A DNA stretch of 63,000 bases, the filler included, from Basidiobolus meristosporus CBS 931.73 (taxonomy: Eukaryota > Fungi > Basidiobolomycota), in NCBI GenBank assembly GCA_002104905.1. It is 3 parts of 3 records of this genome, joined end to end, with 100 filler letters (N's around TTAATTAATTAA, not from the genome) between each part and the next. Parts side by side here need not be neighbours in the genome. Positions count along the whole stretch, not along the records: positions 47,554 to 63,000 come from MCFE01001146.1; 2 more parts are not named here. One strand, 5' to 3'. A program made the translations under genes and the position numbers. Below the pieces are notes generated by a model. That model ran no database searches, was not told where the DNA came from, and was given only the letters and a program-made list of their open reading frames with translations. Shown here piece by piece: positions 47,554 to 63,000 of this stretch. Positions within the stretch are counted from its first letter, which is position 1, and each line of letters begins with the position of its first letter.

Positions 47554-49344
47554 CTGGATGCAGATGGATCTTTAAGACAAAATACAAGGCTGATGGCACA
47601 ATTGGAAAATATAAGGCAAGACTTGTGGCCAAAGGATACTCCTAAACAAAAGGACTTGACTACAATGAGACCTTTGCACAGGTAGCCAAGTCTAATTCCA
47701 CCAGATTAATATTGGCTATTGCAGCCAAATATAAGTTTTTTATCCATCAAATGGATATGAAAGCTGCATTTTTTGAATGCAGAACTGGATGATAATGTGT
47801 ATATGAGCCAGCCTGATGGGTTTGCTGACCAAGATAATCCTCATTGGGTCTGCAAGCCTAAAGGGTTTCTATTGGTACTTGAGCATTTTGCAAGTGACTG
47901 GAATTGCAAAATAGATTCTTATTTGAAATGCTTGAGTTACCAAAGGAGTAATGCTGACTATAGTATATACTATAAGCCAGATAGAGCAAGTCTAGTTCTA
48001 TTAGCTCTATATGTGGATGATCTTATTATAGCCACCAATAGATCCAAAACACTGGAAGAGACCAAATCCAGCCTATCTAAAGAGTTCAAGATGTCCAATC
48101 TAGGAGAACTCAGTTACAACTTAGGGATATAGCTCTCCATAGACAGAAGTAACAAGACTATCACCCTAGGCCAATCCAAGTATATTCAAGATATACTAAC
48201 AAAGTACCAAATGGAAAACTGTAAACCAGCAGCTACCCCAATGGAAACAAACCTTAACTTGATCAAAACAACCAAATCAAGAGAGTTTGGTGCCATCTGA
48301 AAGCCATGACTTTCCTTATCAATCTATAGTTGGCAGTCTGATGTTATCATGCTTGGAACATGTCCATATATCTTATATTCAGTGGGAGTTGTCAGCCAGC
48401 ACAATCAGAACTATGGATCTGATGATATTGCAGCAGTCAAGTGGATTTTAGATAACCAAAAGGAACTGCTGACATCTGCTTAAGATACACTTATAAGGAT
48501 TCAGAACAGGAACTTGTGGGTTACTTTGATGCTGATTGGGGACAAAATTTGGAAGACAGGAGATCCACTACAGGATACACCTTTCTTCACTGTAAAGGAG
48601 CAATATCATGGATATCAAAAAAGCAACCAAATGTAGCACATTCTACCACAGAGGCAGAGTATATGGCAGCCTGGGAGGCAACAAAAGAAGCAATGTGGCT
48701 AAGGAGGCTTTTTAAAGATTTATGTTTATGTCAAAAACACCTATTACTTTATTTCAAGATAATCAGGGATGTATACAATTAGGTAGAAATCCAGCTTTTC
48801 ATGCTAGAACTAAGCGCATAGATGTTAGACATCATTTCATATGTGAACCTATAAAGAGTAGCTTAGTTAACTTAGCTTATTGTCCTACAGAAGAAAATAC
48901 TGCAGACATGCTTACTAAACCCTTAGCTAGAGATAATTTGAATATCTTAGGTCAAAATTAGGACAAATAAGTATAAACATTTACTTGAGTGGGAGTGTTC
49001 TAAAAATTTGTAACTCCACCTAAATGCTCACCTAACTTAGTTGCTTAGATCATTACCTCCAAATCCTAGAGAATACTGACTAAAATCCTTGCTGGGATTT
49101 ACTTGGAATATTTTCACCAAAAAATCAGGTACCCAGAATATGATAATTCTCACAGTTGTCCAACCGGCCACAACCTTTGCACATATGCTCTTGGGACCTT
49201 CCTAAACCTATTCAGTGTGTTTATTATGCCAAGATCATGTAAAAGTATACATACCACTTTTACATTCAATATATCATTAAGTGAGTTCCACACAATCTAC
49301 TTGTTCTCCCAATCACTTCCAATATCTCCAAGACTCTTACAACA
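47554..49344 (+). mobile_element. Ty1/copia copy 6, 3' half (RT-RNase H, PPT GAGTGGGAG, 3' LTR 48996-49344)
   Basis: LYVDDL, FDADWGQNLEDRRSTTGY, EAEYMA and ADMLTKPL motifs with stops and frameshifts. Confidence 0.93.
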
Positions 49345-49893
49345 GCTTATTGGCCACTGAGCCAATGGGCAGCTCACAGCTTCACAATGCATTTGGACTA
49401 ATCAACCACTGTCATATCACTTAATCAAAAGGATGGTAACCAAAATGATAAGTATCAGTATAATGAGTAGTGTGATAAGCTTTCATGACCATTAACATTA
49501 AAGACAAATATCCAAATACCTGATTGTACCTACCATAATAGTGGTATCCAATTGTGCCTGCAATACAAACTTTACAAGTTGGTCCAATCATCTGTGCCAA
49601 CCTCATTGTATCAGAATGTGCTATAGTGTGCAAGATTGTCCCACATAGTGCCATATTGCCCAAGAGCAATCCTGCCTGCTGGTAGCTATATTATTGCACC
49701 CAATCATTTTTAGAGTTCATGGATTGTGCTGTACACCCTGGCACAGTAGAATGGAACAAGTTCAATATGTGGATGATCTTATTAGAAGCAACTCATAGCC
49801 CAAAAAAGCCCCAAAGTGACTAAATTCAGCCCATATGTGGAGTTTAATATGTCCAATCTGGGTGAGCTCTTTCACTGCTTGAGGATAAGGCTC

Positions 49894-50243
49894 TGTTGTA
49901 AGAGTCTTGGAGATATTGGAAGTGATTGGGAGAACAAGTAGATTATGTGGTTTTCACTTAATGATTTATTGAATGTAAAAGTAGTATTTATACTTTTACA
50001 TGGTCTTGGCATTACAAACACATAGAATAGGTTAAGGAAGGTCCCAAGAACATGTGTGCAAAGTTTGGGGCTGTTTGGACAACTTTGAGAATTTTCATGT
50101 TCTGGGTACCTGGTATTTTGGTGAAAATATTGTAAGTAAATCCCGACAAGGAATTTGGTCAGTATTCTCTAGGATTTGAAGGTGATGATCTAAGTGACTA
50201 AGTTAGGTGAATATTTAGGTGGAAAATACGAATTTTTACAACA
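49894..50243 (-). mobile_element. Solo LTR (350 bp) with perfect 5-bp TSD GGCTC, inserted in an older copia RT fragment (about 49760-50330)
   Basis: GGCTC at 49889-49893 and 50244-50248. The flanks rejoin into decayed YVDDL...SNLGEL...IDR RT sequence. Confidence 0.95.
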
Positions 50244-50389
50244 GGCTCTTCATAGACAGAGGTACTCAGATTGTTACCTTTACTCTGTCCAGGAAAACTC
50301 AAGGCATACTGGAAGGTAGCAAATGGAAGACTGTACACCAGCTGCCACCTCAGTGAAGACACACCAAGATGTGGTCAGACATCAGCCAA

Positions 50390-50707
50390 ATCCATTGTCA
50401 GACTTTTGGAGATATCCAAAGTGATTGGAACATATGGTTTTCACTTACCAATATATTGAATGCAACAGTAGTATTTATACTTTTAGATGGTCTTGGCAAG
50501 ATAAACACATGCTATATGCTAGGAAGCTCCCAAGAATGTGTGCGCACAACTTTAGGAAATTTCATGTTCTTGATACCTGATATCTTGGTGAATATATTTC
50601 AAGTAAATCATGGCAGGGTATTAGGTAGAATTCTCTATGATTTGTAAGCTATGACCTTGGTGACCAAGTTAGGTCAGTGTTCAGGTGTAATTATGAAATT
50701 TACAACA
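50390..50707 (-). mobile_element. Old degenerate copia LTR at the right edge of the island
   Basis: Diverged match to the family LTR, with outer end ...TACAACA at 50707. Confidence 0.75.
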
Positions 50708-51813
50708 AAATCAAGAGTTGCTTGGTATCATTTGAATGCCCAGACCTCCCTTGTCCTATCATATGACCATCAAGGGAGCATCTGGCTGGAGTTCACTGCT
50801 GTGGCTCACTTGGCCAATCCATACCTACCAGTAAGCGGGGGGAGGGGGGGTTCCACCTAGATCCAAGTGTTGGGGAAGACCAGATCACTGTGGTACCCCC
50901 TTCCAGTTGGGTTTGGACAGGGAACACGTACCACTAGTCACCATATAGCAGCTTCATGGCAATTGGTGCGTGCTGTGTATTGATGAGCGAGTGACCAACA
51001 TGAAAATCTACCATAGGGAGGGAGGAGGGCGACCGGACAAAGCACTGATCGCTCTCATGGGATGGTGTGAGCATCGCCACGGCATGGGTACATCCATGTA
51101 GATCCAACATTGCCAGCCTCCCCCTAAAACCCGGTGGCTTGGCTCCATGGTAAGATTCAAGTCTCATCAACCATCTTCACGGCCAGTGGTGGACCAGGTA
51201 GTTTGGATACGGAAGCGGTCATGGCATCTTGGGTCATCCAGGTGAGGGTACACACCGCAAGTACCAAGCTGTGACCACATTCGGTGGACTCGGTTGGGCG
51301 TCAACACAATTGAGGCGACGTGCAGCGTTCCAAACCCAATTTGGATCCCCACCCAACCAGGTAGGAACTTGTCTGGGGGGGGTAGATTGTAGCCCAGGGG
51401 GGAGGAATGATTGGCTGAAGGGGAAAATTCACGAGCCACCAAACCCATCCCGGACAGAGCGGGTAGCGTGCAGTGGTGGCGAACATGGGTGAAGGATGAG
51501 ATGATCCGGTGACGCGATGATGGTGGCATCCTAAAGTAACCACCACGGTGATGGCGAGATTGACCGGGCAAGTGGGGTGATTGGTCCACCAGCTTCACAC
51601 TCACCGCACGTTATTTTTACCATCTGTCGGATGGGAGCGACCATCCACTGGCCAGGTTTGACCCTTGGTATGCATACGTAACAATGGCGAGGGGGAGAGA
51701 ATGCAGTGGATGGTGGGCCAGAGTATAAAATCCCTCCCGACATTCCCGACATGGGACTTCGTATCCAATCCTCGATCCTCGACCCACTTCCCTCAATCCC
51801 ACTTCCCTTCACC

Positions 51814-52425
51814 ATGGTCAAGATCTACATCATCATCCACACCGTTTACCACCACATCTACCAACTCGCCCTTGCCATCAAGGAAGGCGTCGAGAAGGTT
51901 CCCGGCGTGGAGGTCTCCCTCTTCCAGGTCCCCGAAACCCTATCGGAGGAGGTGTTGGCCAAGATGCACGCCCCACCCAAGCCGGACATTCCGGTGATCA
52001 CCCCGGCGCAGTTGGAGGAAGCGGACGGCTTCATCTTCGGCATCCCCACCAGATACGGCACCCAGCCAGGTCAGTGGAGAGCATTCTGGGACGCGACCGG
52101 CTCCCTGTGGGCCCGTGGCGCTTTGGCCAAGAAGTTCGCCACCACCTTCTTCTCCACCGCGTCCCAACACGGCGGACAGGAGACCACCGCATTGACCTCG
52201 CTGACCACCTTGGCCCATCACGGAATCATCTACGTTCCCCTTGGCTACACCTCGCCCCATCTCACTGACAACAGCGAGGTGCTCGGGGGCAGCGCGTACG
52301 GCGCGGGCACCATCGCCGGTGGAGACGGCTCTCGCAAACCATCCGCCAAGGAGTTGGAGGTGGCCAACCACCAAGGGGAGTACTTTGCCAAGATTGTCCA
52401 GCAGTATGTCCGCGGTGCCCAGTAA
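51814..52425 (+). CDS. Flavodoxin-like NAD(P)H:quinone oxidoreductase, WrbA/Pst2/Ycp4 family, 203 aa, intronless
   Basis: FQVPETLSEEVLAKMHAPPK, DGFIFGIPTRYG, FWDATGSLW, STASQHGGQETT, GGSAYGAGTIAGGDGSRKPS. TATAAAA lies upstream at about 51724. Confidence 0.95.
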   Translation: MVKIYIIIHTVYHHIYQLALAIKEGVEKVPGVEVSLFQVPETLSEEVLAKMHAPPKPDIPVITPAQLEEADGFIFGIPTRYGTQPGQWRAFWDATGSLWARGALAKKFATTFFSTASQHGGQETTALTSLTTLAHHGIIYVPLGYTSPHLTDNSEVLGGSAYGAGTIAGGDGSRKPSAKELEVANHQGEYFAKIVQQYVRGAQ

Positions 52426-52829
52426 TTGCCCCTGGAGCGCGCGATCTGCAACCTTTCCCCCTTCCCGCGGCCCCTCCCCTCCACTCCAACATCCACACCA
52501 CCCCTATGTCGCCACCCCCCCCCCTTGGTGCTCACATTCTCCATAATAAACCAACTCAAACCAACAAACCCTGACATCAGTGTTACATAAGTTGTGTCAG
52601 CATGAGACGGACGGGACCCGATGTCGTCATTCGGCTGACGTCACCCAACCATCCCTTCCTACGGGTCCCAGCGGACCAGTGTTTGAGGAATATATATTGT
52701 GGCCTGGCCATGGGCAGAGCAGAAAACTCCAGTAAACCAACGAAAGCCACGTTGGCCATATACACCCAAACACACCCAACCCACAGCCATACCACAGCAC
52801 CACATCACGTTACATCCCCCCCACCAACC

Positions 52830-53383
52830 ATGACATCCACTAACAAGGTAGGTTCATCGAGCTGCGACGAGAGAGAGGAGAGACTGACCCCTGGACAGGA
52901 AGGACCCTCAGGAAACACGCTCGCCGGTCTGAGAGACACGGTGTCCGGCAAGGCGAAGGTAAGGGTTGGGATTACGGGTGAACGGAAGCGATGGTAAGGG
53001 AACTAACCAAACCTTGGTTGCTTTCCGGTGTTTACCACGACCAGGAAGAGATCGGGGAGCTGACGGGGAACCCGGAGATGGGCGGGGTGGGGAGCTACGA
53101 GAAGCAGCTTGGTCAACAGGAGCTCGCCGCCCCGGACGGCCCGCGACTGAGAAAGGGTCTGGGAACGGGCGGCCCGAACGAATCCGCGGACCAGACGAAT
53201 CGAACGGTCGAGGATGATCAGGAGATCGATGTGGCCAGGGCCTCGGAGTACGCGGAAGGAGCGGGCACGAAGGTGGCGGGAATCATCGAGTCGGTGGTTG
53301 GAAGTATCATCGGGGACGAGTCGCTCAAGGACCAAGGGGAAAGTAAGAAGATCGAAGGGGAACTTCAGATGCGCAACGCCTGA
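52830..53383 (+). CDS. CsbD-like stress protein, about 138 aa; exons 52830-52847, 52899-52958, 53045-53383
   Basis: Two CsbD-like modules (GKAKEEIGELTGNPEM...GQQE and GTKVAGIIESVVGSIIGDESLKDQG...EGE), joined in frame by two GT-AG introns. Confidence 0.75.
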
Positions 53384-53634
53384 CCCCAACCCTAACCCAA
53401 TCTGACCTGATCATCCACCTATCCACCGACCGTTTGTCGCGTACACCCCCACTCGGGAAGGGAACCTCCGCCAATCATGGCACTTACGAAGGATCCAGAC
53501 AACAAACCACCCACCTAATAAACACCCATTCCCAGACCGCAATCTTGATTGGTCCCTCGATCGGTAGTTGTAAATAAACCGTGGATCGAGCATTTATTTG
53601 CCCATCACATATCGATATCGCCACTTACCGAGTC

Positions 53635-54675
53635 ATGACTCTACATCCACCCATCCCTCCCCCGAAGCCCATTTTCAGGGATTCGTCCGAGGGGCAGCCC
53701 GTCCCTCCGCCCAGACCGACGGCTCCCCCCGCTCCCTTTGACAGGGAAGACACGAACTTACACGAATGCGACCAAGAGGGCGTCGAGGGTAGTCAAGCCC
53801 GCACCTCACTCATCAGCGCGAAACAAGGTTGCCTACCCGTGGTGCCTCTGGAAGGGGGGAGGCGGCCCAACGAGAAGCCCGGATCCAGAAGAAAGGAGCT
53901 GCCCTCCCTGCCTGTGCACGAGAAACACGTCTACCGGGAGTTGGTGAGAGAGGGGCCAGAGAACGGGGCTGGACTGTTGTTGGAGGAAGAGGGAAGCGGG
54001 AGCGGGAGCGGGAACATGGTGAAGGTGGATCATATGAGCTTCGTCCGTGTCCAAACCGCGTCATCCCATCCAAATTCCCATGATACCAGGTCGGATACCC
54101 ATCCCGATACCGAATCCCCTCCTTACGTCAATCCAGCCGTACCCGTCAACTCTAAACCCCACAAATATGGTCAGTTGGTGGGACAAACCAGATCCACCAA
54201 ACCATTGCCGAAGCCTCGTACCACCTCGGGGGCATTGGAGCTGGCCCAAAGCGAGCTCAAGCTAGCCTACTTCCAGGTGAACTCTCTACAGCAGCGGGTG
54301 TCGAGCCAGCAGGAAGAACTGGACCGGCAGCGGGCACGGGAGGAGCAGCACGCGAGGGAGCGCTCCGAGCTGGTCCTGCGCAACCTGGAGATGTCGGAAA
54401 CGGAGGCCCGCCTCAGGGCAGAGATATCGGGGATGCGGGAGGCGATGTCTCGGTTGGAAACGGAGAACGCCCGCCTGACCAGGGAGATGGAGAAGCTCAC
54501 GGTGGAGAATGAGCGCCGATTGCTGGCGGTCGAGCGACAATCTGCCTACCTCAAGGCGGAGCTGATCAAAAGCGCCACGTTCGCCGACTCGGCGGTTCAG
54601 CAGATCCTGATGGGGGCCACGAACGTGGGCCAGGTGGCCGCCTGCTTGGGCAGCCTAGGTAAGATCGACCCGTAG
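53635..54675 (+). CDS. Hypothetical protein, Pro-rich N-terminus and C-terminal coiled coil, about 346 aa
   Basis: Long GC-rich ORF with strong heptad character from ELAQSELK to AELIK. AATAAA at 54741 downstream. Confidence 0.8.
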   Translation: MTLHPPIPPPKPIFRDSSEGQPVPPPRPTAPPAPFDREDTNLHECDQEGVEGSQARTSLISAKQGCLPVVPLEGGRRPNEKPGSRRKELPSLPVHEKHVYRELVREGPENGAGLLLEEEGSGSGSGNMVKVDHMSFVRVQTASSHPNSHDTRSDTHPDTESPPYVNPAVPVNSKPHKYGQLVGQTRSTKPLPKPRTTSGALELAQSELKLAYFQVNSLQQRVSSQQEELDRQRAREEQHARERSELVLRNLEMSETEARLRAEISGMREAMSRLETENARLTREMEKLTVENERRLLAVERQSAYLKAELIKSATFADSAVQQILMGATNVGQVAACLGSLGKIDP

Positions 54676-54773
54676 GCCGGGGTCGGGAGTGTACAGTTGA
54701 AGGAAGAATACGTCGGGGATGGGATGCACGTATTATTGTGAATAAACAAGTCGGGTTTTATTGATGAATCTTG

Positions 54774-55033
54774 TTATGTCCATTGATCGGGTTGGTCCTG
54801 CTTAATGATGGACCACAGAAACATCCCGTTGTACCCCAACACCAAGGAGGCAACGCAGCCGAGAGTGATCAGCGGGCTTACGCTGGGCTTCCCCTGGCCT
54901 TGCTCTAGAAATGGAGGTTAGTCCTGGCTCGAACGACATCCCCCGAGAATTCCTTACCAAAACTGCTCTCCAAGCCTAGCGAGCAGCCCACGAGCGCCAG
55001 GACGAAGAGAAGCGCGGGTGTTGGGTGGTTCAT
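54774..55033 (-). CDS. Small two-exon membrane protein, 68 aa (signal peptide + one TM); exons 55033-54958, 54904-54774
   Basis: 53-nt intron with GTAAGG donor, ACTAAC branch and CTAG acceptor gives MNHPTPALLFVLALVGCSLGLESSFEQGQGKPSVSPLITLGCVASLVLGYNGMFLWSIIKQDQPDQWT. AATAAA on the minus strand lies just after the stop. Confidence 0.65.
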
Positions 55034-55882
55034 GATGGCACGGAAGAGAGCGCGTGTCGGTGCGGCTATATATGGCACCGTCGGATGCAGGAGCGTTTCG
55101 AGGACCACTTGGAACCGCAATCCATGGTAACTTGGAGCGTTGAAACGCAGATGAGACGTACATGTCGCAAGCGGGCCTCACATCATTTCCAATTAGGAGC
55201 CAATCGATATCTGGGATCCATTTGATGGCCATTTGATGGCCATTTGAGGGATTAATTGAGCCAAAAGCTGGTCGAGCTATCTTTCCATAAATGGGCCACC
55301 AGTTAGACTACATCAACATGGAATAGGAAGGCAGGAAAGGTGGACAGACTCTAGATGCGATCAGTGAATGCGTCATCAATAGGCATCCTCCTCAGCACCA
55401 ACACCCACACCCGCGGTTGAATCTTGAACACCGCCACATTCCGGAATCAACGGCCAGGATCAGAAGCCACCAGGCTACACAGGTATCTGGCTCGTATCGT
55501 GTCGAGGATCAATAAGGATTGATTGAATGGAAATTCGACACCGCTTCTCGCCATAAACAGCTGTCGACGCATTCTCGGATACGACCAGATCTACGTATTT
55601 TGGGAATGAGGTTGGGATCATGAACGAGCACTCAGATCTACGCATTTGGGAATGCAGTTGTGATCATGGATGAGCACTTCATTCGCTCACCGGTGATTCA
55701 GATTCAATTTCAATACCAGGGACTTCGTAATGGGTGACATCAGGCGGTTCTGGCCAATCAGGGCCGCGATCCCGATAGCCACCTTATGGGGAGTCGCTGG
55801 TGTCGATAAAGCATGGCCGAGGAGTATAAATGGGCCGCACCCGCTGAATCATCCCCTCGTAATTCCCATTCGATCCATTGAA

Positions 55883-57562
55883 ATGCCTGGATTCACAGTC
55901 AACACTGTCCCCACCACTCCATACGAAGGCCAGAAGCCGGGCACCTCCGGCTTGCGTAAGCGAGTCAAAGTGTTCCAACAAAAGAATTACACCGAGAACT
56001 TCATCCAGGCCACCTTGGCCGCCATGCCCGCCCCCGGGGCCAAGGGAAGCACCTTGGTGGTAGGTGGTGATGGCAGATACTACTCCAAGGACGCCATCCA
56101 GATCATCATCCGCCTTGCCGCCGGCAACGGCGTCACCAAGCTCATCATCGGCAGAAACGGCATCCTCTCCACCCCCGCCGCCTCCAACCTCATCCGCAAG
56201 CGCAAGGTCTCCGGAGGCATCCTCCTCACCGCCTCTCACAACCCCGGAGGCCCCGAGAACGACTTCGGCATCAAGTACAACATCAGCAACGGCGGGCCTG
56301 CCCCCGAGGCCGTCACCGACGCCATCTACGAGAAGACCACCCAGATCAAGGAGTACTACGAGAGCAACATCCCCGAGGTTGATCTCAACCAGATCGGGGA
56401 GCAGAGCTTCGACGGATTCTCGGTCGAGATCGTCGACTCGGTCGCCGATTACGTCGAGATGTCCAAGGAGATCTTCGACTTCCCCAAGATCAAGGAGTTC
56501 TTCCAGAAGCGCCCCGAGTTCAAGGTTCTCTTCGACGGCATGCACGGAGTGACCGGCCCCTACGGACAACGGATCTTTGTCGAGGAGCTCGGCCTCCCCG
56601 CCACCTCGGTCATGAACTGCGTGCCCAAGGAAGACTTCGGCGGTGGCCATCCCGACCCCAACCTCACCTACGCTCACGAGCTCGTCGAGAGAGTCGAGAA
56701 GGAGAACATCCACTTCGGAGCCGCCTCCGACGGTGACGGTGATCGTAACATGATCATCGGCAAGGGATGCTTTGTCACCCCCTCGGACTCTGTGGCCGTC
56801 ATCGCCGCCCACGCCGAATCCATCCCCTACTTCAGAAAGAACGGTGTCAAGGGACTTGCCAGAAGCATGCCCACCAGCACCGCACTCGACCGCGTCGCCC
56901 AGAAGAAGGGCTTGGAGTACTTCGAGGTCCCCACCGGATGGAAGTTCTTCGGCAACCTCATGGATGCCGATCGTCTCTCCATCTGCGGTGAGGAATCGTT
57001 CGGAACCGGATCGAACCACATCCGCGAGAAGGACGGCATCTGGGCCATCCTCGCCTGGTTGAACATCTTGGCTGCCGAGAACGACAAGAACGCCCAGGTC
57101 GGGATCAAGGACATCTTGGCCGAGCACTACCACACCTACGGCCGCAACTTCTTCACTCGCTACGACTACGAGGAGGTGGACTCCGCCGCTGCCGGCAAGA
57201 TGGTCGACCACTTGAACGAGTATCTCACCACCAAGAAGGCCGAGTTCATCGGCACCAGCTTTGGTGAGTTCAAGGTTGCCGACGCCGACAACTTCTCCTA
57301 CACCGACCCCATCGACAACAGCGTTTCCAAGAACCAGGGCATCCGTATCATCTTCAGCGACAGCTCTCGCATCATCTTCCGTCTCAGCGGCACCGGCTCC
57401 CAAGGGGCCACCATCCGCTTGTACATCGAGAAGTACGAGTCCGATCCATCCAAGTACGACTTGGACGCCCAGGTCGCCTTGAAGCCATTGGTTGAACAGG
57501 CCCTCACTCTCTCGCAGCTGACCAAGTTCACTGGCCGTGAAAGACCCACCGTCATCACATAA
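55883..57562 (+). CDS. PGM: Phosphoglucomutase, 559 aa, intronless (true start MPGFTV at 55883)
   Basis: [11 protein letters not shown], catalytic TASHNP, metal loop DGDGDR, sugar-binding GEESF and RLSGTG. TATAAAT at about 55826 lies inside the over-extended ORF. Confidence 0.97.
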
Positions 57563-57924
57563 GCGAACTCGTCCACCGACCCTCACCTATGTACATACAT
57601 ATTCCCTTAATTCACCTCTTCCAATATCGTGAATAATTATCGTGAATAATAAATCCAATCCATTTTTCCATTCATTGTTGATTCCCCATGCCTCCGTAGT
57701 CGATTTGTTTTTCACCTGTCGACCGGCATCTTGATTGCCAAAAATATTGATGAAAAAATATCCCAGTCCGGAAGCCAATGATCGTCCTGTCGAGACTTCC
57801 ATCGACAAAAAAATCCCAATTCCTGATGTGCGAGCGTTCGGCAACGAAGAGGGGGGGGGGGGGGGGGGGATCGCTATATCTGGATTGATCCAGGTTCGTT
57901 CTTGGAAGTGTCAGTATTTTCGAC

Positions 57925-60900
57925 ATGGACTACGCAAACGTGCTGAAGGAACTGGAGGAAGCCTGTGCCGACTTTCATGTGAGTTGACCTGTGAGTGTGC
58001 GGTCTTCGCTTTCGTTGGTTAATGGACTTTGCTTGTTCAGGTGCCCGCCACCAGAGTGGCTGCGGAGCAGACGTTGCTAGCCTTCCAAAAGACCCCCAAT
58101 GTTCTACCCGTTTGCCAATACATTCTCGGTAAGTCCTCCCTTCCCCCTTCCTCCGTCCCCTCCGCCTCCGCCTCCCCCTTCAAGCCGAGCGAACCCCCTA
58201 TCCCACCCTTCGTCGCGCCTTTGCTCACAGGTTTCTTCATTCCACTCCACCAAGAACACGCCACCAACTCCATGTTGCTCTTCCACGCGGTCACCGCGAT
58301 GAAGGAGTGCTTCGCTCGGGAATACGCCGACCTGGACAAACCGAAGGTCACCGAGTTGAAGAATTATCTTCTCAACTACGTTTTCCAGAAACCAACGTGA
58401 GTCAGCCTCCCCCTCCTCATTGCATCTGCTCTCCGTACCCTCGACGGAGCCTACCACCCCAACCCGACCCTACCGACCTTGCTGACCCGCTTCAACCACC
58501 AATCTAGCCTGGAAAGATATGTTTGTGAGCAGGTTCTTCAGGTGATATCTCTTTCCAAGCCTTAGCCACCCCGTTACCTCGACTCAACACCCTTTCTCAG
58601 GTAGTTGCGGTTATCATGAAGAGAAGCTGGCAGGATCTCTCGGACGAAGAGAAGGAGTCGGCCTTCCAAGGGATCCTTGGGCTTATCCAAGCCAATGCTC
58701 ACGGGGTAACTGCAACCATGCTCTTGACTCCGCAAAACCAGCCATTCACCCAATCCACCTTCCACAGCAAACCCTCGGGATCCGATTGTTCAGTGCGCTG
58801 ACCGACGAGTTCTCCAGCACGAAGGCCAGCAGCATCGGACTATCCTGGGATTTCCATTTTGCCTGCAAACAATCCTTCGAGGTAGGCCATCATTCCCTTC
58901 CCCTTCCCCTTCCCCTTCCTCCGCAACCATTAACTGACCAACTCACTTCCCTCGATCTAGCGCGTTTATCTTCGAAAAATCCTGGAGCAGGACTTGAAGA
59001 TCCTGCACGAGCAGCTCAGCCGTGGAGACGCTCTTCACGGGGCCAAATGCTCCGAGGGGCTGAAGGCAACGGTCTCGCTGGCGGAGCGGATCCTGACTTG
59101 GGAGTTTAGTGAGCAATGTCGGTTCAGCGACCGCCACGCCGTTCATCTAGTTCGACCTTACTAACCCATCTGAACTCTACAGGCGGTCAGCTCATGGTCG
59201 GCTCCTTCGGGGACGCCAGCGACGAGTTGGTGAAGAAGTTGGTCCTTCCGGAAGATTGGACCGAGATCCTGTTGAACCACGATGTGCTGAACCTCTTTTT
59301 CCAGGTAGGTCGATTTCCATCTCTCGTGACTCACGGTCTGCGGACTGACCCCGGACGTGGCGTAGCTTTATACAGTGGTCCAGAGGGACGAGGGGGCCGC
59401 CAATCACTCTAGACAATGCCTGGTTCAGCTGTCCGGGCTTCGGGGGCCAATGTTCGCGAATGAGGAGGTTCTTTGCTCGTACGCTTCGTGCATGCTGAGA
59501 GGGCAGCTGCAGTTGATCACCAGGTAAGCATGTGTGGCTTATTTCGCCAGCCCACCCTCCGCTCACACCCATTCCCTCAGCCTTTCGGGCATGATCCACC
59601 AAGAGAACTTCGAGTTCGGGCCAGCAGTGTTGGGCGTGTGCGAGATGATCAATCGCTTGGTCGATACCGTCAAGCTGGCCGTGCTCTGTCAGATGTCGGA
59701 GTTCTTCCAGTACATGACGGAGATCGGCAAGCTCACCTCCACCTGCCTCCAGCACGCGGCAACCGAGGTTGATGATACCTGGAATATGGAGGCGTTCGAT
59801 CAGCTGCTCGAGATGTGGGTCACTCTAGGTAAGTGCCTAAACCGTATGCGTGCCGCTGCTCGGGCTAATCCCGGCTAGTTTCCAAGGCCACCGACCCTTA
59901 CCAGTCGGACGCCGAGCCTCTGAAGTCGTCCGGATTCATCCCATTCCTCACCAACGCCAGCTCCCACGTGGTTGAAGCCTACGTCCAGGTGCGTCTAGAA
60001 ATAGCCAAGCAGTTCATCGAGGACTTCGACGAGGACGACGGGAATTTCAAAGACCAGGTAGGCCGCTTCTCCTCCCGTCTGCTCATTGCGCCATACGCTG
60101 ACCCATTCTTCCAGGACATGTACGCCGATCAGCTGATCGGCGTTGCCACGCTGGCTCGCATGAATCCCAAGCAGTCGATCGAGGCGCTCGACGGCCTGCT
60201 GAGACAGAAGTTCGATCTACTTCGCAGCCATTACCAGTCCAGCCACGCCCAGTTCGGCGACCAGCATTCGGTGCTGCTTCACGAGCAGATCCACTGGCTC
60301 TTGCTGATCGCGGGTCATGTGCTGTGCGATGGCGGGCAAGGCGAGAAGCCACTCGTCCCTGACTCCCTCATGCGGCTTTCCGTAGCGCAGGACAATTCCG
60401 AAAACAACGCGATCGTCTCTCTTTCCTCCGCAGTGTTCTCGATGCTCGAGTTCCTGTCTCTGGACCCACATGAGCCAATGGTAAGCCGTCCTCAATCCAC
60501 TTTCCATCGCTGCTCCTGACCGGCCCCTCCAGGCCACCTTCTGCAGCCCTCTAGTCGCCGAAACCCTCTTCTGGTTCATCGAGCGGTGGTCGCGCACCTA
60601 TCTTCTCATCGAGCCGCAAGAATACAGTCATATCAGGTAGCGCAGCGTGCAGACCCTTGATCCCTGCAACCTACTCATCCTCCTCCTCCACCACCCCAGC
60701 GCCAGTCTAGCACAGGCGTTTGGAAACGGCGTCGGCGGCCAGACTATTCTGGTCGCGCTCGTTGACAAGCTGCAGAGCAACTTCTACCAATGGAACGCCG
60801 AGGAAGAGGTGTTGATCCAGGTAGATTGGCCACTCAGAACCTCCTCATACACAGCAACTAACCATGACAACCCAGCTGATCAAAATCATCAACACGTTCG

Positions 60901-62750
60901 CCAAGACCGCCAACATCAGAAACGCCCTCCTTGCGTGTGGTAAGTTCTTTGCCCGGGCCTCTCCAGCAGTTCGATCGCTCACTCGACGTAGAAAAATTCC
61001 CGGTTCTTATCCAGTTCTTCACTCAACACCTCGGAAACTTCCCGGAGATCGTTCACAGGTAGCTGGTCGGACAACGGCTCGATTCCACCGCAACTCCTAA
61101 CCCATCCCAAGTGCTTTGATTCAAGCCATCACTCTAGTCATCTCGGGTGCTTCGTCGGAGGTGCAACGCCAGCAATACTTTGGCCTTGTGACTGGCGCCG
61201 TGGAGGTAAGTCCCGCCATCCTGCCCATGGATTGTTCAGCCCCATTCACCTCGGCCGAGTAGAAGCAATTCGTCGCCGTGCTCCAGCGCCCTGATTTCAA
61301 TCAAGTCTACCAGAACTCCGATGTCATTTCCCAAGTGCTGAACTCGCTTGATGTACGTATTCTTGCTCCCTGCCGCCCGGCCGTTGCTAACACCCCTGCC
61401 CCAGATGCTCGATGGACTGGCCTTGGCTGCCGACCCCTTCAACACCAAGTATATCCACGCGTTTGCTTCCCGGTTCTTCGAAAGCCTTGCCCAGCTTCTC
61501 AATATTTATCAACGCCACCCTGAAGTGGAGATCCAGATCATCCAGCTGCTTTCGTCCTTGTGCAAATATCTGGTGAGTGCCGCGGAGTCTGTATCGTTCT
61601 GCTGCGTCTAACCCCCCTCGGAACTCAGGACTTTAGTGAGCTCGAGGCGCACCAGGTCAGAGACTTCTATCTGGTCATCGGAAACGCCATCAAGGTCTAT
61701 TCTACCCAGAGCCTTAGTAAGCGTCTATTCAACCTCAACCTCAGCCTCAACCCCCACCACGCATCTGCCCTAACCCCTCCCAAGACAAGGCCAGGGATCG
61801 CAATTACGACAAGCAGCAGGAGAACCCTTACCAAGACATCGTTGCCTTCACCAAGCTGTTGTTGGCTCTGATCGTCTCTGAGCCCTCGGCCGCCGACGTC
61901 GCCGAAATCCTCTTCTTCGGAACAAACCAACTGATTCCCCTGATGACCTTGGAGATGCTCGAGGTTGGTGCCTCGATGTAATGTGGGTGGGTCCCCGTCG
62001 CGCTAACCTCGTCTTTGCTTAGATCCCCAAGATCTGCGGCGATTATGTGGAGCTTATTGCCCAGTTGATTGACCGTTACCACGACAGACTGGTCAACCTT
62101 CCATCCGACCTATTCGTAAGCCTGATGCAGTCCCTGGAGTACGCGCTCAGACAATATCCTTTCTATGCCAGACACCACTGCTAGCTTCGTGGCCCCTAGG
62201 CTCCTTGACTCGTGTCCCCACCCCTATCTATGACATCTCTAGGTTAGCCTTCCAGTCCATAGCCTCCCTGGCCCTATTCTTCGCCAACAACCCCTCTGCC
62301 AAAGGTACGCCCACTGTCCAGCTTCCCATTCGTCGCTCTGACTAACTTCCCTGCAGAGTTCCTCCTTCCGACCATGCGGAAGTTCCTGGACCAGATCATG
62401 AACATGCTGCTGTACGAGGAATTCGACATGGACTTGCTCGAACCGGCTAGCGAAGCCTTGTACTTGCTAATCGCTTCCCAACAGGTAGCCACCCCCTCAC
62501 ATGACCTGCCCTCGCACCCCGTATTGAACTCCCTTCCACTTAGGAGCAATTGAGCGTCATCGCCCACACCGTCATTCAGCAACAAGTCAACCCGCAAGTC
62601 CAGGTGAGATTGTCCGGCTACTTCACCCACCTCCAGCAATCCATACCCGCGGTGCAAACGTATCCGCTGATGGCGAATTGCTCCGCCGGCTTCCGAGACA
62701 CCCTCACGAAATTCTTGATGGACATTCGAGGTGTCTTGCGAGTCAAATAA
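57925..62750 (+). CDS. XPO4: Exportin-4, about two dozen short introns
   Basis: Spliced N-terminus ...AAEQTLLAFQKTPNVLPVCQYILEHATNSMLLFHAVTAMKECFAREY...LLNYVFQKPNLERYVCEQVLQVVAVIMKR, internal LLHEQIHWLLLIAGHVLCDGGQGEKPLVP and C-terminal ...MDIRGVLRVK parallel metazoan XPO4 as recalled. Confidence 0.9.
62154..62221 (+). other. U12-type AT-AC intron (68 nt, phase 2) in XPO4
   Basis: 5' ATATCCTTT, branch TCCTTGAC at 62202-62209, 3' ...CCCCAC. Excision gives SLEYALRHPIYDISRLAFQSI in frame. Confidence 0.88.
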
Positions 62751-63000
62751 TTCCAATCCTCTATAATAAACCTTTTGTTTTCTTCCCATGGATGTATCTG
62801 CCGGTACTCTCGCAGCTGTCCTGTGCTTAGGGGTCTGCTAACCTGTGAATTCATTTAGATACATTGGCTTTTTAGCATAGGGTGGTTGGTTCATACTCTT
62901 TCTTGAATTCCTTGAAATTCCCAATCATGCCAGTTTTCCATAATACTACAGTTCAAACAAGAAGGATATCATTGTCTTGTATATATATATCATCAAAGTT

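Follow-up and report, generated by a model that had tools for sequence, protein, structure and literature searches.

Positions 62154-62221 of the stretch analysed here are very probably a U12-dependent AT-AC intron in the exportin-4 gene (XPO4) of Basidiobolus meristosporus. The window is that whole stretch, 63,000 nucleotides with filler, of which positions 47554-63000 (the piece carrying XPO4) come from record MCFE01001146.1 of strain CBS 931.73. Two lines of evidence support this reading: the colinearity of the flanking exons with their homologues, and the existence, in two Glomeromycotina genomes, of an AT-AC intron that matches this one in position and phase.

Results

The Basidiobolus exportin-4 gene

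The features of the locus are collected in Table 1. Our model of XPO4 contains 23 GT-AG introns of 50-111 nt and one AT-AC intron, the sole U12-type member among the 24, and has no internal stop; a single minor intron among about two dozen U2 introns is also what a first, sequence-only reading of this DNA had claimed. The exons were searched singly, and the concatenated exon coordinates served only for the codon count and the stop test. The closest relatives of the gene product bear the name Exportin-4, and the exons match mouse exportin-4 (PDB 5DLQ chain B) with E-values of 2e-9 and 2e-4. On contig MCFE01000043.1, where the same gene occupies 164903-169723, its product (1096 aa) carries Pfam XPO4 (PF28490). 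Next to XPO4 lies an intronless phosphoglucomutase gene (55883-57559) with practically complete identity to K493DRAFT_311625 of B. meristosporus CBS 931.73. A B. ranarum contig with a syntenic phosphoglucomutase gene breaks off within the 5′ part of XPO4. Two other introns of the gene, intron 11 (60058-60114, 57 nt) and intron 2 (58129-58230, 102 nt), keep the reading frame and contain no stop codon; if retained, they would lengthen the protein by 19 or 34 residues, respectively, and leave it unbroken. An Rfam search of the piece of about 15 kb (E≤1) gave no matches, and thus no snRNA gene there.

Table 1. Coordinates of the features at the exportin-4 locus and of the orthologous introns (window positions unless a locus is named).
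Feature	Location	Strand	Description
Exportin-4 (XPO4) coding region	57925..62750	+	25 exons, 1101 codons before the stop
Exon 22	62023..62153	+	IPKICGDYVELIAQLIDRYHDRLVNLPSDLFVSLMQSLEYALR plus CA; aligns to mouse XPO4 936-975 and to fungal homologues
Probable U12-type AT-AC intron, B. meristosporus exportin-4 gene	62154..62221	+	68 nt, phase 2; CA, then ATATCCTTT, TCCTTGAC and AC, then C CCT ATC TAT GAC
U12-type 5′ splice site ATATCCTTT	62154..62162	+	motif match
U12-type branch-point sequence TCCTTGAC	62202..62209	+	branch A taken as 62208
3′ splice site, terminal AC	62220..62221	+	sole end that restores both the frame and the 12-residue spacing
Exon 23	62222..62304	+	C completing the His codon, then PIYDISRLAFQSIASLALFFANNPSAK, then 1 base of the next codon
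Competing in-frame GT-AG interval	62139..62242	+	GTACGC...TAG (AG 62241-62242), 104 nt; would delete YALRHPIYDISR
In-frame GC-AG interval	62180..62262	+	in place of the AT-AC intron gives exactly 1096 aa (-5 aa)
Intron of Gigaspora margarita (WTPW01000336.1)	L004 5509-5574		66 nt; GAA TAT GGA ATT GAA AA, then ATATCCTTT, TCCTTGAC and AC, then T CCT ATA TAT GAA
Intron of Ambispora gerdemannii (CAJVPL010000023.1)	L001 5939-6012		74 nt; GAG TTC GGA ATT ACG AA, then ATATCCTTTCC, ACCTTAAC and AC, then C CCC ATC TAT GAT

Signals and boundaries of the intron

The sequence-only reading had pointed to ATATCCTTT, TCCTTGAC and a terminal AC, and all three lie where it had placed them. The 5′ site fits the U12 pattern /[AG]TATCCTT, the branch box fits TCCTTRAY with its branch A in the range of about 10-15 nt from the 3′ splice site, and the termini, AT (62154-62155) and AC (62220-62221), are those of the AT-AC subtype. 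From 62208, the second A of the branch motif, to the last base of the intron we count 13 nt. The branch box has a G where the commonest consensus, TCCTTAAC, has an A, and is still within TCCTTRAY. Single motifs of this kind are not rare, RTATCCTT occurring three times and TCCTTRAY six times in the window. When both strands of the 15.4-kb piece were scanned for RTATCCTT followed by TCCTTRAY and then by AC or AG 8-15 nt past the branch A, this three-signal combination was found at one site, 62154-62221, against a chance expectation of about 0.01 per random piece of like composition.

The junctions read CTGGAG TACGCGCTCAGACA/ATATCCTTTCTATGCC...GGCTCCTTGACTCGTGTCCCCAC/CCCTATCTATGACATCTCTAGGTTAGCC, the slashes marking the intron ends. 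Read-through in the frame of the upstream exon gives SLEYALRQYPFYARHHC and is halted by a TAG at 62182-62184, as the earlier claim of a stop near 62182 had it. Because the coding frame downstream (PIYDISRLAFQSI) differs from that upstream, the length removed must be 2 modulo 3. Moreover, since both flanks are conserved and the TAG interrupts the frame, the intron must start between about 62153 and this stop and end at 62221. The bases 62140-62188 contain no GT, and none of the GT-AG or GC-AG pairs preserves both conserved flanks; the AT-AC boundaries alone do so, and with the exact spacing. Excision of the 68 nt joins CA/C into a His codon and yields SLEYALRHPIYDISRLAFQSI, that is SLE-YALRHPIYDISR-LAFQSI, thereby restoring an open frame colinear with the orthologues.

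Colinearity of the flanks with other exportins

Exon 12, used as the query of an exhaustive HMMER search, led to full-length exportin-4 proteins of Endogone, Jimgerdemannia, Calcarisporiella, Mortierella, Circinella, Bifiguratus, Ambispora, several chytrids and a crinoid. When the homologues were compared with the gene by tblastn and with one another in protein alignments, a conserved block SLEFGIDH-DIGEVSRL-TLQAISPLAL emerged, in which the Basidiobolus sequence places YALRH opposite FGIDH, PIYDISRL opposite DIGEVSRL and PIYDISRLAFQSIASLAL opposite DIGEVSRLTLQAISPLAL; PIYDISRLAFQSI of exon 23 corresponds to DIGEVSRLTLQAI, PIYDVARQGYQAI and PIYEVSRLAYQAI in the homologues. After excision of the AT-AC intron, the distance from SLE to the conserved L is exactly 12 residues, a spacing common to Endogone, Jimgerdemannia, Umbelopsis, the Mucorales, Bifiguratus, Calcarisporiella, Mortierella, the chytrids, the crinoid and mouse XPO4 (5DLQ_B), which reads SLELGMTSMSSEVCQLCLEAL in the same block without a gap. 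The SLE-to-LAFQSI product put forward in the sequence-only reading is thus gap-free against both the fungal exportin-4 proteins and mouse XPO4, and the mammalian sequence and 12-residue spacing that it had quoted were right.

The named exportin-4 relatives that we retrieved belong to the Mucoromycota, Glomeromycotina, Mortierellomycotina, Zoopagomycota, chytrids and animals, with no ascomycete or basidiomycete among them. The taxa of these named relatives are consistent with a loss of XPO4 in Dikarya.

The same intron in Glomeromycotina and its absence elsewhere

Orthologues from Gigaspora margarita and Ambispora gerdemannii carry a U12-type intron at the matching position. In all three species the codon preceding P-I-Y is split after its second base (phase 2), and AATATCCTTT is invariant across the three-species intron alignment. 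The two Glomeromycotina introns share with that of Basidiobolus the codon, the phase, the 5′ site, the AC end and the approximate length (66 and 74 against 68 nt), and their branch box is identical to it in Gigaspora and differs by one mismatch in Ambispora. Outside the U12 splice signals, however, the intron sequences cannot be aligned among the three species: those of the Glomeromycotina are AT-rich and unrelated between the signals, whereas that of Basidiobolus is GC-rich.

The site has no intron in the XPO4 genes of Mortierella alpina, Circinella minor, Calcarisporiella thermophila and Geranomyces michiganensis, and it is also intron-free in a Coemansia and in the crinoid Antedon. The Calcarisporiella gene has two RTATCCT-like strings (L010 710 and 1156), which were dropped as unlike splice donors. 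The Coemansia sp. exportin-4 gene (L009 201-3875) is wholly intronless and encodes 1224 aa, as against the 24 introns of the Basidiobolus gene.

A second copy of the locus

Contig MCFE01000043.1, also from CBS 931.73, matches the piece with 99.0% identity over 12.8 kb, with 61 mismatches and 11 gaps. Alignment of the two across the XPO4 region shows 24 substitutions and two indels, of 6 and 5 bases, making 35 differing positions in all, yet not one of them lies within 61755-62495, so that the intron region is identical. Since the same intron region is found in two independent sequences, an assembly slip is ruled out. The piece (47554-63000), being distinct from MCFE01000043.1, would represent a second haplotype, a paralogous copy or another strain.

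Some further differences between the two copies may be recorded here. Over 47554-49894 the identity falls to only 94.5%. A segment of the AT-rich upstream DNA, at about 49893-50243, is found in MCFE01000043.1 in inverted form and once more downstream; these copies, with some 88% identity, suggest a repeat element. Just 5′ of the XPO4 start codon, the G run at 57849-57870 is 6 bases longer than in MCFE01000043.1.

Public gene models at the site

All six Glomeromycotina exportin-4 models that we retrieved (P0308, P0311, P0323, P0326, P0329 and P0017) are faulty precisely at this intron, which bears out the claim that annotators restricted to GT-AG would err. Either they skip an exon, as in Gigaspora margarita and G. 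rosea, or they force a GT...AG pair, as in Ambispora, where EFGITN is lost; the model for Diversispora is irregular at this point, and in that of Dentiscutata the peptide KYPLF is the translated read-through of A-ATATCCTTT-A, followed by a jump.

The public B. meristosporus model has 1096 aa, compared with 1101 aa for a product spliced at the AT-AC intron and 1089 aa for one spliced at GT-AG 62139-62242. Because 1096 aa fits neither value, this model is probably wrong at the site, a judgement based on the length of the product. The GC-AG interval at 62180-62262 matches that length, and we infer that it may be the mis-annotation concerned; its product would read YALRQYPFYARHHS-SLALFF, a read-through of the type seen in Dentiscutata. 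At this place, the public protein may read YALRQYPFYARHHSSLALFF, the GC-AG workaround, or YALRHPIYDISRLAFQSI. As a real intron, GC-AG 62180-62262 was rejected; it does not keep both conserved flanks.

Discussion

If the intron at 62154-62221 is processed by the standard mechanism of its class, U11 snRNA would pair with the 5′ site ATATCCTTT and U12 snRNA with TCCTTGAC, bulging an A as the branch point, after which U6atac would take the place of U11 at the 5′ site. Cleavage after the AC, 13 nt past the branch A, would then join CA to C, and the resulting mRNA would encode SLEYALRHPIYDISRLAFQSI as one colinear part of a HEAT-repeat exportin. Gene finders restricted to GT-AG or GC-AG introns mis-model this intron.

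The sequence-only reading had also drawn attention to the competing pair formed by GTACGC at 62139 and the AG at 62242, which indeed exists, is in frame and deletes 12 residues. It is very unlikely that this pair delimits the real intron, a U2-type one, with the inner U12-like motifs present by chance and a protein 12 residues shorter. Intron 23 (62305) has the same donor hexamer, GTACGC, the acceptor TAG is typical of the XPO4 gene, and the interval is stop-free as well as in frame. However, more than 20 in-frame, stop-free GT-AG or GC-AG alternatives lie around the intron by chance, and the frame of this one therefore carries no weight. Furthermore, its removal deletes YALRHPIYDISR, which is aligned residue for residue in every colinear homologue, mouse included; its donor GT is missing in Gigaspora (GAATATGG), neither Gigaspora nor Ambispora has an AG at the codon that matches its acceptor, and it leaves unexplained the U12 signals conserved across three genera. 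We thus reject it as the intron. A combined use of both pairs, in which the U12 intron would be nested in a U2 intron and two in-frame isoforms would arise from a regulated U12/U2 switch, appears hardly more than a slight possibility. Both sets of signals are present at the site, and competition between U12 and U2 splicing is known for some animal minor introns. Nevertheless, the U2 sites of the nested pair are not kept in all relatives, and the short isoform would be without 12 residues that are conserved gap-free from fungi to mouse. The earlier suggestion of a U12/U2 switch, or of an intermediate in intron-type conversion, finds no support for these same reasons, and we mention a dual-use site giving a 12-residue-shorter exportin-4 as an added and less likely reading.

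Two further explanations would dispense with the minor spliceosome or with the intron itself. U2-dependent AT-AC introns have U2-like 5′ sites (ATAAGT-like) and are devoid of the TCCTTRAY box. That such introns exist (they are reported in PMC1557818) is what speaks for processing of the AT-AC intron by the major, U2-dependent spliceosome; since 62154-62221 has a full U12 5′ site together with a branch box at U12 spacing, we regard this as extremely improbable. The stop codon and the change of frame between the two flanks would also be expected of a frameshifted pseudogene or an assembly error, in which case 62154-62221 would be no intron at all. Against this, none of the 25 exons is interrupted by a stop and the remaining introns are all canonical, the two assemblies or haplotypes are identical at the intron while differing at 35 other positions, and the 68 nt have exact splice signals at exact boundaries. 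The chance that the gene is a pseudogene or the sequence in error is, in our view, negligible, and the pseudogene reading was rejected. The U12-dependent AT-AC intron is the reading that we retain.

The finding fits what is on record for fungal minor introns. According to two surveys, B. meristosporus is the fungus with the highest density of minor introns, with 249 (0.554%) and 237 introns (PMC10639083; PMC11347168), and no convincing minor introns are reported in Dikarya (PMC10639083; PMC11347168). As B. meristosporus does not belong to the Dikarya, an intron of this kind at 62154-62221 agrees with the known distribution. The sequence-only reading took the intron to imply functional minor snRNAs in this organism. 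For U11, U12 and U6atac, genes have indeed been reported in B. meristosporus, but U4atac is described as putative and divergent only (PMC11347168), and the implication itself was already known. With the minor introns catalogued in B. meristosporus and Rhizophagus irregularis (Larue and Roy 2023, PMC10639083; Olthof et al. 2024, PMC11347168), the intron shares a ATATCCTT 5′ site, a TCCTTRAY box 10-15 nt from the 3′ end, AT-AC termini, a non-zero phase (2) and its location in an old, long, intron-rich gene. Unlike them, it is probably missing from annotation-based lists, the public model being 1096 aa long. We would thus regard 62154-62221 as one more unremarkable case of an established class of introns, the species being known for its minor introns, and what it implies for the species is not new.

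Animal XPO4, a member of the same gene family, also carries a minor intron: Sheth et al. (2006, PMC1557818) give a U12-type intron with AT-AG termini in human and GT-AG termini in mouse. A link with these animal introns had been hinted at from the sequence. In the crinoid Antedon mediterranea, we found an AT-AC intron at L007 2934-3756 (ATATCCTTT...TCCTTAAC...AC, phase 1, after ILCWDFSNIR). However, it lies in the N-terminal third, unlike the Basidiobolus intron, and at the Basidiobolus site a single crinoid exon spans L007 22480-22821 without an intron. Judged on the crinoid gene, homology with the animal XPO4 minor intron was rejected. Intron 7 of the Basidiobolus gene (59109-59182), of the U2-type GT-AG kind and in phase 1, lies 4 codons upstream of the crinoid AT-AC position in an ungapped alignment; this proximity could be a coincidence or the outcome of an old type conversion with sliding.

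The simplest history would be that of an old fungal U12 intron, kept in the two fungal lineages known for their many minor introns and lost elsewhere. Basidiobolus and the Glomeromycotina have its codon and phase in common, and the losses would include those in Mortierella, the Mucorales, Calcarisporiella, a kickxellid and a chytrid. Only tentatively do we propose the wider statement, that Basidiobolus and the Glomeromycotina share an ancestral fungal U12 intron which all the public models examined get wrong.

For annotation, the peptide YP[FL] beside a break in the alignment might serve more generally to reveal ATATCCTT introns that have been overlooked, and annotated proteins could be screened for it, the combination of YP[FL] with a local break marking ATATCCTT read-through.

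In conclusion, the known distribution of the minor spliceosome is unchanged by this intron, B. meristosporus already having minor introns on record. Because the species was already known to possess a minor spliceosome, the main value of the finding is the correction of the gene model: the exportin-4 model is corrected for B. meristosporus, and the same logic applies to at least six Glomeromycotina assemblies. If mis-modelling of this kind is typical, annotation-based surveys would under-count fungal minor introns. The intron adds a well-supported minor intron common to the pair of fungal lineages in which such introns are most abundant, and thereby aids the reconstruction of the ancestral intron content of fungi.
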